This document shows, piece by piece, positions 11,731 to 58,620 of a stretch of DNA of 64,000 nt; the stretch's first letter is position 1; each line of letters opens with the position of its first letter. The stretch lies in the sequence record OQ992561.1; one strand, given 5' to 3'. A program made the position numbers and the translations under genes. The notes under the pieces were generated by a model. It saw nothing but the letters and a program-made list of their open reading frames with translations. It was not told the origin of the DNA and did not search any database.

Positions 11731-14700
11731 TAGTGTTTCCTCTATATACAGCTACAAGATGTTTTCCAGCTGCCCACAAGATACCAGTTGTTGTAGCAAT
11801 GATTTTAGGAGATAGAACCATTCGTTCTTCTACCGATGTATTACCGAATAGTAGATCAATATTACGGCCATCTTCAGTTTCATTACGTCCAGTCATTACA
11901 CGGGAGAATACCGTTTTCATCTGGTTAGCTACTACGCCTTTATCTCCAACACCACATGGGATATCATGATCGATATACACTCGAATAATCATGTGGTCAT
12001 ATTCTAAGGCTCGTCCTTTCACTCGATAGTTAGCATCTACTTGTCCAGTGAAAGTAGGTTCTTTCAATGATTTAGCTCGTTCAGCGCGTTGTTTATCTGA
12101 CGTATTAGCTAATGCTTGTAAACTTGGTGTCATATCGTCTATTTCACCATGATAGAAGCATTCAATCTTTGATACTGTACCTACGAGCTTAGCACGTGGC
12201 GAATATGCTGATAGTTTGCGTAATGTCTCAATAGATGCCTCGTCATATAGTGAGTGAGCAGCTGTTTCAGGATCTTCAATTATACATAGAATTGAATTTA
12301 AGTCGACGTGATCCCCAACTTTCACCATATCTCGAATAGTCTGATCAAACCTAACATCGATATTCTTGATTGCAGTTGTTTGAGTATTTAACCTTTTAGC
12401 TAGGTCTTCAGAAATAACTGAACCGTCTTCTAAAGTGTCAAGGTTATCATCAAATGCTACAACAGCCATACAACCGGCTTTCCATAATACTTGCCCAGGC
12501 GTATACCTATCTTCAGAGAAATAACGTTTGTTATATGTGATAGTATCTCCACGTTTAAACTTATCACCTTTCTTTAATGAGGTAACAAGAATGTGTGGAT
12601 AGTTAACACCAGCTGCTGTGCCATGAACTGTACCTAATTGATATCCAAATACATTACCATCGGCATATTTAACTTGGATACCATATTCATCAATAGCTAC
12701 AACCTCACCATCTTGTTCTGCTGCTACAGCAAAGATAGAACTAGTCCTTTGGGCTATGATTTGTTCATAGCCTGTACGAACTGGTGTAACTGTATACCCA
12801 TCAGCATAAATACCTTGCTGCTGCTGAATTGAGATAAAGTTAATTCGCTTAGGGTCATCATGTTCGGTTGCAACACCAAGCAGTGCACTAGTTGAGAGTA
12901 GTCTAGCTGGCCCATCTGTCTTTGGATCAAACATACGCGTAACACCACGCATGTTTACAAAGTTAGCATCAGGTACTAAGTAAGCAATAACACCAACGTC
13001 ACCTGAGTCCACAGTTGATTCACTGACCACACCAACATCCGCTTCACCGTAAATACGTGTACGTGCAACCATTGAAGTTGGACCGCGTCCACCATCTCCA
13101 CGATAAGTCATCGCTTCTTGTTCACGGATATTTGCAATGGGGTTAGAATCTTCAATAGTGGCTACTGTCGGATCTTGTACAATCTTGCACCAGATCACGT
13201 GTGGATCTAACTCGACAGTTTGCACTGACCCACCATTACGCATATTAAATACACGTACCGCTCTATTGAGTTCATTAAAAATAGCCCCTGCCATGCGCTC
13301 ATAACCACGATAGCGCATATATGCACCATCTACTTCTGCTGGACTCCAGTCGTTCGTTAATAACTCGACAGACCGATAAAGCAATCCTTCAAAAGTAGTT
13401 GGTTCACCCATCTCCTTGAGTAGACCCTCAGTGATTGGATCGACCCATGCTGAGAAGAGTGTATCAATATCACGTGTAAATCTATTACTTAATCCAGCTT
13501 CTTCAAGAACCCTGAAGTAAACATCTCGTTTATTGAAATCATAAACAGAATAACGCCGCAGTGATTTATGATAACGTTTGAGTCCACTTAATACAAGCAT
13601 TGCTTTATAATCAGCTCGATCAAATACTAGGATCTCATCAGCGAACGCTAATGTATAATCCGTACTATTGACAACAATCCTGGTACCACGCTGATGACGC
13701 TGATAATTAACATTCAACTTCTTAAGTAGATTGTTTAAGCCATGGTGATATGCTAAAATGAAACCTAATGGTAGCTCTTTACCACCAATTGACATTAGAA
13801 TAGCTTCTAACGGCGCTTTGGTTAGATCTAAGCCAAGTATATCTGTAATGGTACCAATAGGTTCTAGCTCATTACCTGTTTTCATGTAAAAGATGGAATT
13901 CTTATCTAACAAGATAGCATCAGTGCCATTGAACCCAACCATTATCAAATCATCAGTTTCATAATCTTCGATATGTAATCCTTGTTTTGCAAAGAATTCA
14001 TTACGATCTTTGAAATTAAAATAGAACACATTACGGTGATTATGGAAGCCTTTAAAAGCTGTTCCTAAAGTAGTGTACACCCTTGGTAGAACATAGTTGG
14101 ATTGATCTAATTCAGCATAGGTAACTGAATGTACAGACATATCACTTCCATCTAATGCACGGTTGGTAATCGCTCTGATTAACCAATTATCAAAGTTGTT
14201 TTCAGCACGTTCAGATCTGGTCACAAAGGTCTTATTATAATAAGAGGTCAATGCAACTTTACGTGGATTAACTTTACGAATTGGAATATCAGCACGTTGT
14301 AAACGTTGGCGATATGTTACCCCATTAGACATGAACCTACCGTCATTATCAATGACAGGGATACGGAACATTACTTGTGAACTTCTACCACGAATAGGCT
14401 TTAATGTAACTTTGTGGATTTGGTAATGGTTACCAGAATCGCGTACAGTTTCAATTTTGTAATTAGTTACTGATACGCCTTGTTTCTGAACAGATAACAC
14501 ACTGTTTAAAATATCTTTCTTTAATAAGACCTTGTTGTATTTGCGTTGGATGGCTTTTAACTTACTACCCAACATTGATTTATCAACAATGGTTGGCTTA
14601 TCTTCAAAAGTGGTGTCTTCTGGAATCTTAAGATCATCTGGATGATATTCCATCGCCTCAGCGATCGTCATAGGTTCTACTGATTCATCATTAGGATCGG

Positions 14701-27630: not shown

Positions 27631-27636
27631 CATATT

Positions 27637-45410: not shown

Positions 45411-46013
45411 ATGCAGCGCAATAATGACCCGCAGCAAGTAATCATGTCGATTGAGATGTACAATAGCCTACTGGCTATGGCTAATGATTCACCTCATTAC
45501 ACGACAAAACTTATCCAACGTCACGTGCGAAAGATGAATCCTTTTTTACAACCTGCACATCTAAAGAATGTCAGAACTAAGGAAGCTATTCGGTCCCAAC
45601 GTATTCGTGAAGCTCGGGCTTTCTTCGAAGCCAATCATAGAAAAATTCTGTACGCAAAGGTTGATATGGGTAACTGTAAAAAAGGAGATGATCCGGTTTA
45701 CTTCCCATGCATATCTGAACGTATTGCCAAGAATAGACAACTAATCCAAGTTCGTCATGCCAATGAAGTTGGTTATGGACGGTGCATCCGGTTGGTAGAG
45801 GCTAAATATCTCACAACCATTATTCCTGATGGATATATCCAAGGAACTGGGCCGTATAAAAAATATCTTGTTAAAGAGAATGGTCCTTACGATATCCGTG
45901 AACAAGAAGAAAAACGTAAACAAGCTTTTTCGAGTGAGATAGCTAAGAAGTTTGAGTTCAAACATGATTCTTACGATATGGATAATCTCAAAAAGAATTA
46001 TTATACACAATGA
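45411..46013 (+). CDS. Hypothetical basic protein
   Basis: GGAG SD. Confidence 0.75.
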   Translation: MQRNNDPQQVIMSIEMYNSLLAMANDSPHYTTKLIQRHVRKMNPFLQPAHLKNVRTKEAIRSQRIREARAFFEANHRKILYAKVDMGNCKKGDDPVYFPCISERIAKNRQLIQVRHANEVGYGRCIRLVEAKYLTTIIPDGYIQGTGPYKKYLVKENGPYDIREQEEKRKQAFSSEIAKKFEFKHDSYDMDNLKKNYYTQ

Positions 46014-46809: not shown

Positions 46810-46993
46810 TAACGAACAGTCAGAAATGGATAAGTTAAAACCAATCGATGACTTTTGGAAAACTAAAACAATTAAACCATCAGATGCTTATTTAGAAAGA
46901 AAGAATGAGCAACTAAAGATGATTAATCCGCATAAAGTTTATAATCCATTCAATGAAAAAGATACGGTATTAAAACCTATTTCTAAATTATAA
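46736..46993 (+). CDS. Hypothetical protein in the +1 frame relative to 46645-46809
   Basis: ORF track; start uncertain. Confidence 0.55.
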   Translation: MRNYDGSLRLLFNSTRLRNRETPFDNEQSEMDKLKPIDDFWKTKTIKPSDAYLERKNEQLKMINPHKVYNPFNEKDTVLKPISKL

Positions 46994-57711: not shown

Positions 57712-58620
57712 ATGCTAAAGGTAAAATCATTACTCACTGGCCATATTCTTCGAGCTACCTATGATTGGTTTCTTGAGAATAACTTCAGAGATATTCTAAT
57801 TGTAGCACATACTCAATTAGTACCTGATTTATCTGAGGTAGCTCTAAAGCATGCGAAAGAAGATCACACTATCACTTTCAATATCCATCCACGCTGTGCA
57901 AAGAATTTTTATATCAGTGACGAATATATCTCTTTCAATGTAACAGTAAATGGAGTTGGGGTCAGTATTAAACTTCCTCTTTATGCAGTATTGGGTGTAG
58001 TTACACCTATTGATGATAATTCTAACGCATTCTTTGAAATGCCACTAGTAGATAGATATCTCAATGCAGATACTATTCGTGCAACATTAGAAGGAACTGT
58101 TAATAATGTAGTTGACAAAAACCCAGTATTAACTACCGTAGGTAATGTCACTGAGGTTAATTTTAAAAATAAAGCCGATACCACTAATGGTAAGTTAGTT
58201 GTAAGGAATACATCTGAGAATGAGCATGATCAGATGATTGAAAGCGCCATTAACAGAGTAACTGAATTTAGTAATCCAGAATTAGATGCACATATTAGAG
58301 TAGCGGTAACTGTAATTAAACAGAATGCACCAGAATTAATTATGGATTGGTGTGAGCGGGTTATTAATTGTACACGTAATGAAAACTATCAGGATAACAT
58401 CAATGTACTTATGATGGAACTCCTCAGTTACCCTATTTCAAATGTGGTTAGTGAATCAACTGTGGACTCGGGTGATAATACATCTAATTCATTTGACAAT
58501 GATGTAAATAAGATGGTTGAGGATTTCAATAATTCTTCCAATTCGCAGGTTATTATTAATAAACCTTCTCGTCCTACCGGTACACCAAAACTCACTGTTA
58601 TTAAAGGTGGTAAGAAATGA
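57712..58620 (+). CDS. sspB: SspB-like ClpXP adaptor with long insertion
   Basis: ILRATYDWFLEN...ITFNIHPRC...ISFNVTVNG...LPLYAVLG matches the SspB fold; C-terminal RPTGTPKLTVIK resembles the ClpX-binding tail. Confidence 0.82.
   Translation: MLKVKSLLTGHILRATYDWFLENNFRDILIVAHTQLVPDLSEVALKHAKEDHTITFNIHPRCAKNFYISDEYISFNVTVNGVGVSIKLPLYAVLGVVTPIDDNSNAFFEMPLVDRYLNADTIRATLEGTVNNVVDKNPVLTTVGNVTEVNFKNKADTTNGKLVVRNTSENEHDQMIESAINRVTEFSNPELDAHIRVAVTVIKQNAPELIMDWCERVINCTRNENYQDNINVLMMELLSYPISNVVSESTVDSGDNTSNSFDNDVNKMVEDFNNSSNSQVIINKPSRPTGTPKLTVIKGGKK
58443..58475 (+). repeat. 33-nt dispersed repeat, copy 2 (in SspB-like gene, encodes VVSESTVDSGD)
   Basis: 31/33 identical to the reverse complement of 12999-13031. 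Confidence 0.9.

Follow-up and report, generated by a model that had tools for sequence, protein, structure and literature searches.

Why should the gene for a virion RNA polymerase subunit and the gene for a protease adaptor, some 45 kb apart on a jumbo-phage genome, share a run of eleven codons? The question is raised by positions 124001-188000 of Pseudomonas phage ANB1 (OQ992561.1), a phage of the phiKZ species; this whole stretch of 64,000 nucleotides (nt) is referred to here as the window. The two genes are gp178, which encodes the beta subunit of the virion RNA polymerase, and gp232, which encodes an SspB-like protein. An initial annotation of the window had pointed out that a 33-nt patch occurs in both, 31/33 identical with an exact run of 20 nt, in inverted orientation and 45.4 kb apart, and all of this is correct. 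Both copies are read in one shared frame as VVSESTVDSGD, and both mismatches fall on synonymous third codon positions. By sequence comparison, the residues concerned in beta are 1014-1024 in phiKZ numbering, which is offset by one from that of ANB1 because ANB1 has an extra glutamate upstream. The patch in gp232 is interpreted here, with moderate confidence, as an ancient in-frame ectopic copy of the beta sequence, neutral or nearly so, whose likeness to its source is maintained by occasional non-allelic gene conversion.

Could a match of this length arise without copying? In a self-comparison of the whole 279-kb ANB1 genome, taken in six pieces, the patch ranks second among gene-to-gene matches, with an expectation value (E) of 2.6e-6. 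The higher-scoring match is found in one pair of paralogous tail genes only, and a collagen-like repeat within one tail-fibre gene ties with the patch in score. The remaining gene-to-gene matches are at most 26 nt long, with E of at least 0.003, bar a 26-nt ribosome-binding-site/start-codon motif (E 8e-6) that the crude open reading frame (ORF) filter counted as coding. Inside the genes of the window there is no exact repeat longer than that of the patch; the longer repeats are terminator-like hairpins or a palindrome. The patch is also the sole peptide of at least nine residues that is common to non-paralogous proteins of ANB1, a genome-wide comparison that bears out the earlier statement that an eleven-residue identity is beyond chance in this proteome. 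One unrelated eight-residue match between ANB1 proteins was found as well.

The choice of codons argues for copying at the nucleotide level over convergence, as had been proposed. In the window, 8/11 codons are identical between the copies, compared with 4.6 expected for independent encodings; phiKZ reaches 9/11 (P 0.005), and phage 30-1 reaches 10/11 (P 5e-4). Among the shared codons are the rarer GTG and GAC, which make up 11% of valine codons and 18% of aspartate codons, respectively. All 47 phiKZ-species genomes of the phage collection have the two copies, each between its own flanks. An assembly chimera is therefore excluded, and the insert is not confined to this isolate, an outcome that the initial annotation had entertained. 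Chance similarity, convergence on one peptide, or an assembly artefact would have nothing but the shortness of the match to recommend it; with the E value, the identity of minor codons and 47 independently sequenced genomes all against it, this explanation is rated as already refuted and its probability as negligible.

Are there other captured fragments in the genome? The genome-wide self-search that had been suggested was run, and neither the nucleotide self-comparison nor the comparison of shared peptides found another captured gene fragment in ANB1 at significance. An 18-nt exact in-frame match (IREQE) between beta, at 13114-13131 on the minus strand and 80 nt upstream of the patch, and the ORF at 45411-46013, at 45892-45909 on the plus strand, was considered as a second capture and rejected, its E of 0.42 being at the level of chance. 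Two observations concern repeats of other kinds. Outside the window, 60 nt at ANB1 89340-89399 and 94707-94766 are 92% identical (KLASHIKNFNNPHVVTADQV) between two paralogous minor tail protein genes. Within it, GC-rich hairpins of 21-24 nt repeat at positions 27636/61690, 2225/34763 and 3730/8221 (an example is TGCCTCCCTTCGGGGAGGCTTTAT); these look like a common family of intrinsic terminators between genes.

Which of the two genes was the donor? The beta motif [VTI][VI]SE[SA]TxDS[GS]D is conserved in 24 diverse chimallivirus relatives, and PhiPA3, D6 and metagenomic beta fragments keep the identical eleven residues. Since all chimallivirus beta genes examined have the motif conserved and distant SspB-like proteins lack it, the copy was made in the direction from beta to gp232; judged from these comparisons, VVSESTVDSGD is ancestral in beta, and beta is the donor.

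What the motif corresponds to in cellular polymerases is less clear than had been stated. An alignment of this beta segment with the conserved CPIETPEG region near the catalytic centre had been described as established, and this could not be reproduced: phmmer, local alignment and hhalign start only at the EHDD motif. The C-terminal 390 residues of gp178 (1055-1447) align with Thermus beta (phmmer, E 5e-8), and hhalign of gp178 against E. coli RpoB gives 78% probability across the EHDD region. Over the patch itself, no alignment with cellular beta was obtained by Pfam, by phmmer against the PDB (queried with the whole protein, 201 residues or 53 residues) or by hhalign, and Smith-Waterman alignment (BLOSUM) to E. 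coli RpoB is no better than with shuffles. The patch lies about 45 residues upstream of EHDD in gp178, and CPIETPEG lies 110 residues upstream of EHDD in E. coli. By pattern alone, SE.T.D.G against IE.TPEG, an equivalence of the patch with CPIETPEG is plausible.

Two further records of beta deserve mention. In a beta gene from the Logan assembly of SRR18341025 (about 80% identical), a segment of about 43 nt at roughly 1986-2036, coding TSMVARTRVYGQADV, is inverted between the 7-nt inverted repeats CAACTAC/GTAGTTG. The ORF is broken, and the inverted segment stops precisely at the 5' edge of VVSESTVDSGD. Either the library or the assembly introduced this inversion, or a genuine template-switch event took place at this spot. 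The partial proteins P0091 and P0092, labelled Klebsiella pneumoniae, are 95-96% identical to gp178 and are phiKZ-like phage reads within bacterial assemblies.

How old is the copy? In searches of 1.8 and 5.8 billion proteins, a single intermediate orthologue of gp232 was found. This protein, P0001, has 318 residues, is 64% identical to gp232, and is encoded on a 1.8-kb Logan contig from sample SRR25779217; among further sources of intermediates, IMG/VR gave only the phiKZ-like PA7, and the JGI metagenomes gave none. At the homologous position P0001 reads VASEPTVDSDN, coded GTA GCT AGT GAA CCA ACT GTC GAT TCA GAT AAT. This DNA is identical to beta at 24/33 positions, far above the level of unrelated sequences, and on that comparison the P0001 patch is related to beta. 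The serine codon AGT is found in phiKZ beta and in both gp232 lineages; other beta genes use TCG or TCC. Since P0001 carries the patch at the homologous site, the capture is older than the split between phiKZ and P0001. The two gp232 genes differ by about 1.0 synonymous changes per synonymous site (dS) and 0.24 nonsynonymous changes per nonsynonymous site (dN), and 40% of the codons for conserved residues differ between them.

In P0001, the patch has not stayed in step with beta. Its identity to the patch of gp232 (64%) equals the average of the protein, compared with 92% in the tail and 27% in the 11 residues that follow the patch. It matches 0/17 beta motif variants, and since its residues A2, P5, D10 and N11 are seen in no beta, the P0001 patch does not track a beta sequence. 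The alignment of homologues proposed at the outset thus has a divided outcome: P0001 has the patch in diverged form, and more distant SspB-like proteins lack it. In D6 and Psa21, each checked against its own beta, the SspB-like gene contains no beta-derived patch, and the linker of the D6 gene has no second match in the D6 genome. The linker DNA of the Psa21 gene (1100-1491) has a second BLAST match in its own genome, the position of which was not located; within the 50 kb covered, the best match lies in PSA21_292, an 18-mer at 46970-46987 that is in frame (EDDTNT).

Have the two copies evolved independently within the phiKZ species? They are identical at 31/33 positions in ANB1, 32/33 in phiKZ and 33/33 in 30-1. 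The copies thus differ at 0-2 positions in these phages; in the diverged 124.01-type and T2P-type haplotypes the number is at least three, and the patches of phiKZ and P0001 differ at 8/33. The gp232 patch is unusually variable within the species. Five of the 47 polymorphic sites of a 1.7-kb locus fall within these 33 nt (expected 0.9, P 0.002), two more lie directly after them (58476 and 58477), and in both diverged haplotypes polymorphism is densest in the patch. At 5 of the 7 variable sites (58449, 58464, 58470, 58476 and 58477), one of the alleles agrees with a beta allele. In beta, just two patch positions are polymorphic, both synonymously (V1016 GTC/GTT and V1021 GTG/GTT), and the same two changes segregate in gp232 (V246 GTT/GTC and V251 GTG/GTT). 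Two variable sites in 33 nt, against 0.9 expected, are no excess for the beta patch. A V246I allele of gp232 occurs in four genomes of the T2P group.

Paralogous copies are therefore closer to each other than orthologous copies are, and they share polymorphisms, as is looked for in gene conversion. The pattern is suggestive, though not proof, of occasional exchange between the copies and hence of concerted evolution. It resembles the non-allelic gene conversion of short dispersed repeats in the greater similarity of paralogues than of orthologues, in shared polymorphism and in local excess variation. It differs in that the tract is only 33-36 nt long and joins two unrelated genes, and in that the transfer is deduced from the pattern.

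What kind of protein received the copy? It had been called an SspB-like adaptor, and sequence, profile and fold matches agree on this, though the family-model scores lie below curated cut-offs. Residues 11-108 of gp232 match SspB chains in the PDB (phmmer, E 1.4e-8). The protein matches the NCBIfam ClpXP specificity-enhancing factor at E 4e-13 with 49.7 bits, against a cut-off of 202, and Pfam PF04386 with 23.5 bits, against a cut-off of 27; scores below these cut-offs indicate a distant SspB relative and not an equivalog. In an AlphaFold model that drew on 19 homologues, the N-terminal domain is similar to 1OU9, 1OX8 and chain Y of 8ET3 (Foldseek E 6e-8 to 1e-6, TM-score 0.75-0.80). Helices are predicted at residues 169-184, 189-205, 207-218 and 226-238; this four-helix region is absent from bacterial SspB and gave no structural match in Foldseek. 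Residues 132-166 are modelled as disordered, a short helix is placed at 262-273, and the tail is of low confidence. The patch lies in a linker stretch without secondary structure, where the predicted local distance difference test score (pLDDT) is below 50-55, and this stretch is probably disordered.

A C-terminal motif of the L-x-V-[VI]-K type tethers SspB to ClpX. The bacterial SspB matches terminate in LRVVK, LTVVK, LTVIK or LKIIK, the tail of gp232 is PKLTVIKGGKK, and phage relatives have PSRYKGKPKLTVIKGGKK in common with gp232 at the C-terminal tail. Sequence and model together suggest that gp232 is built like a ClpXP adaptor whose middle part is longer and partly structured. It is like bacterial SspB (1OU9, 1OX9 and 8ET3) in its N-terminal fold, flexible linker and C-terminal L-x-V-[VI]-K-type motif, but it is about twice as long and has the extra helices at 169-238, GGKK after the candidate motif, and the beta-derived patch in its linker. 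The same N-terminal domain is present in other jumbo-phage SspB-like proteins (RAY gp039, Psa21 gp299 and the D6 homologue) and in the metagenomic P0004, P0005, P0021, P0033 and P0085, and the tail PLLDFG...KGKPKLT[VL]I[KQH]GGKK is common to gp232 and its SspB-like relatives in nucleus-forming jumbo phages. Unlike gp232, these other proteins of nucleus-forming jumbo phages do not have the VVSESTVDSGD patch nor, in the cases that allowed a check, another match to the beta gene of their own phage.

Experimental data on the protein come from published work. Tagged PHIKZ232 is diffuse in the cytoplasm (PMC10449902), and the fusion of Erwinia phage RAY gp039, noted as an 'SspB-like ClpXP adaptor', is cytoplasmic too (PMC10299810). 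When phiKZ was subjected to transposon sequencing (PMC12676376, supplement), PHIKZ232 had 22-43 insertions, and PHIKZ178 had none after selection; gp232 is thus dispensable in PAO1 under laboratory conditions. In the record of phage U5 (MT995928.1), the gp232 gene (800-1708) is labelled 'HNH homing endonuclease' and the gp233 gene (1971-2678) 'recombination endonuclease subunit D12'. There is no HNH signal in gp232, and these labels are probably misplaced.

How might the present situation have come about? A piece of gp178 of 33-36 nt was copied ectopically, probably via template switching or non-allelic gene conversion, and landed in the linker-coding part of the accessory gene gp232, in sense orientation and in the frame of the donor, before the phiKZ and P0001 lineages separated. 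In the P0001 lineage the copy has drifted like the remainder of the protein, and in phiKZ the copies have stayed, or have been remade, near-identical. Of this account, the data establish the copying, how old and how singular in the genome it is, where in the protein the patch sits, how it varies, and that gp232 is dispensable; the route of capture, repeated conversion and neutrality are its probable parts. The likeliest cause of this near-identity would be occasional short-tract conversion between the inverted 33-nt repeats in recombination-active replicating phage DNA. The linker that joins the helical region to the ClpX-binding-like tail is probably disordered; the peptide would be tolerated there, and it probably has no specific task. 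Among the possibilities listed in the initial annotation, a neutral scar of template switching comes closest to this account, to which two things are added: the capture is old, and the copies seem to have been made alike again since.

Several points weigh against this account. A length of 33 nt comes close to the minimum for homologous exchange, and the conversion events are deduced, none having been seen directly. The statistics are modest, at P 0.002 for the cluster; the case against an old copy without any exchange stands at about 0.01-0.1, and it loses further strength should purifying selection act on the peptide. The haplotypes are mosaic, without clean conversion tracts. Within the patch, 4 of the 5 polymorphisms of gp232 are synonymous (4 to 1), and such an excess fits both imports from a constrained gene and selection on the peptide. 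The shared G-to-T change could be recurrent mutation. The association of gp232-GTC with beta-GTC in 8/8 genomes was rejected as evidence, for the strains are related and represent one or two independent events. The own beta of the P0001 phage was not recovered from sample SRR25779217 in searches with 201-residue and 401-residue fragments. Finally, dispensability in PAO1 in lysogeny broth may leave room for a conditional role of gp232.

A hairpin or quasi-palindrome was considered as the cause of a recurrent G-to-T change and rejected, as the DNA is predicted to fold no more stably than shuffled sequence. The residues ESTVDS form a codon palindrome (GAnTCnACnGTnGAnTC, window 58450-58466), in which 7/9 arm positions pair with GTG and 8/9 with GTT. 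In the ORF at 58428-58595 (minus strand), the other strand of the patch also reads ...PESTVDSLT.

Does the peptide in the linker do something? It has been proposed that the copy mimics beta; it could then serve as such a mimic, as bait or as pseudo-substrate, and purifying selection rather than conversion would maintain its sequence. Such a copy might engage a factor for unfolded or unassembled beta, or fill the adaptor's own groove, coupling either to ClpXP. The predicted adaptor parts of gp232 and its cytoplasmic location, shared with ClpXP, are in keeping with this idea, as are the long retention of the patch in an indel-prone linker, with the core VxSExTVDS kept in P0001, the mostly synonymous polymorphism, and the better conservation of the patch than of the eleven residues after it. 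However, mimicry is not maintained in P0001, which differs at 4/11 residues by changes that occur in no beta, and the V246I allele, the probably disordered location, the dispensability of the gene in the laboratory and the lack of such an insert in other chimallivirus SspB-like proteins all weaken the proposal, for which positive evidence was not found. Purifying selection accounts neither for the synonymous excess in the patch nor for the near-identity at synonymous sites. In addition, the motif is presumably buried in folded beta, given its conservation and its nearness to EHDD. A functional peptide held by selection is therefore considered unlikely, and the caution with which protein-level constraint was first treated holds, such constraint being unproven. 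More doubtful again is a combination of the two ideas, in which the linker holds a deliberate copy of the beta peptide that is kept in step by gene conversion and used as bait or pseudo-substrate; it might tune the handling of unassembled beta by ClpXP, or distract a host factor that recognises the epitope.

Other explanations place the function in the nucleic acid. The patch might be a decoy or second site for a sequence-specific nuclease, such as a homing endonuclease or clustered regularly interspaced short palindromic repeats (CRISPR), or for an RNA regulator, and the synonymous cluster would then represent escape mutations. The neighbourhood gives this some appeal, for beside gp178 lies a mobile element that some strains have and others lack: the phiKZ reference and some twelve of the 47 strains carry, at gp180, a ~1.45-kb insert with the gp179 HNH endonuclease gene. 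Moreover, variable sites coincide between the copies of the patch, and in PhiPA3 the HNH endonuclease gp210 nicks gp178, its target being D1072 in EHDD (PMC11620839). The PhiPA3 case resembles this idea in the gene involved and in the general principle that a conserved catalytic motif serves as DNA target, but the target lies about 140 nt downstream of the patch. In a tblastn search with a 201-residue beta fragment, which returned 290 phage records (265/290 covering at least 80% of the query in one place), no beta was broken at the patch (query residues 86-96) among the 60 of 290 matches listed, and the partial matches among them end at query residues 144-147, the EHDD site. Many metagenomic chimallivirus beta genes (P0101-P0144) are likewise annotated in two parts, with the break at the EHDD site, and an intron or split at D1072, as described for PhiPA3, appears to be widespread. 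To our knowledge, no intron or endonuclease gene occurs at the patch site. The beta patch has no excess variation, a DNA decoy is of no obvious benefit against a nuclease, and the two mRNAs carry the same sense sequence and so cannot pair with each other. A role as a nuclease or regulator target, though suggested early on, is thus very unlikely. Still less is to be expected from an inversion site, also suggested, at which programmed or recurrent recombination would turn over the 45 kb that lie between the inverted 33-nt repeats. Given the inverted orientation and the common frame of the repeats, crossing over between them would create two chimeric genes, both in frame: gp232(1-255)-beta(1026-1452), and beta(1-1025) with the ClpX-binding-like tail. 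Yet 93-nt queries across each copy and its flanks have full-length matches in 47/47 records, so that strand and spacing (~45-47 kb between the copies) are parental throughout; no recombinase is linked to the site; and a crossover would split and destroy the essential beta gene, so that inversion products should occur only as rare dead ends. An inversion site is accordingly regarded as extremely improbable.

Table. Positions in the window of the two copies of the patch, of the genes that carry them and of associated features.
Feature	Position	Strand	Remarks
Recipient copy of patch	58443..58475	+	in gp232, residues 245-255, codons 58444-58476, VVSESTVDSGD
Donor copy of patch	12999..13031	-	in gp178 (virion RNA polymerase beta), residues 1015-1025
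gp232 (PHIKZ232), SspB-like protein of 302 residues	57712..58620	+	909-nt ORF, 100% identical to PHIKZ232
SspB-type substrate-binding domain, residues 8-128	57733..58095	+	predicted; pLDDT ~90
Extra four-helix region, residues 169-238	58216..58425	+	predicted; pLDDT 84-93; ends 6 residues before patch
KLTVIK, candidate ClpX-binding (XB) motif, residues 293-298	58588..58605	+	followed by GGKK and the stop codon
gp178, virion RNA polymerase beta subunit of 1452 residues	11714..16072	-	PHROG 3148 at E 0
EHDD motif of gp178	12854..12865	-	second Asp is phiKZ D1072; ~140 nt downstream of, and distinct from, patch
gp180, beta-prime N-terminal gene, 550 residues	16075..17727	-	intact in window, adjoins gp178

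What does the locus mean for the biology of these phages? Judged by its sequence, PHIKZ232 is a member of a conserved phage family of SspB-like proteins with a ClpX-binding-type tail. If its linker were to hold a bait, this would be a new viral way to programme or steer a host protease adaptor. If instead the patch is an old ectopic copy maintained by conversion, as favoured here, it would be a natural case of a very short (33-nt) copy between unrelated jumbo-phage genes that persists and appears to evolve in concert with its source, and it would inform how little homology phiKZ-type recombination requires. Lethal in-frame chimeras of beta and the adaptor would then be expected at a measurable rate, and the pair of copies would provide an internal reporter of ectopic recombination in the phage nucleus.

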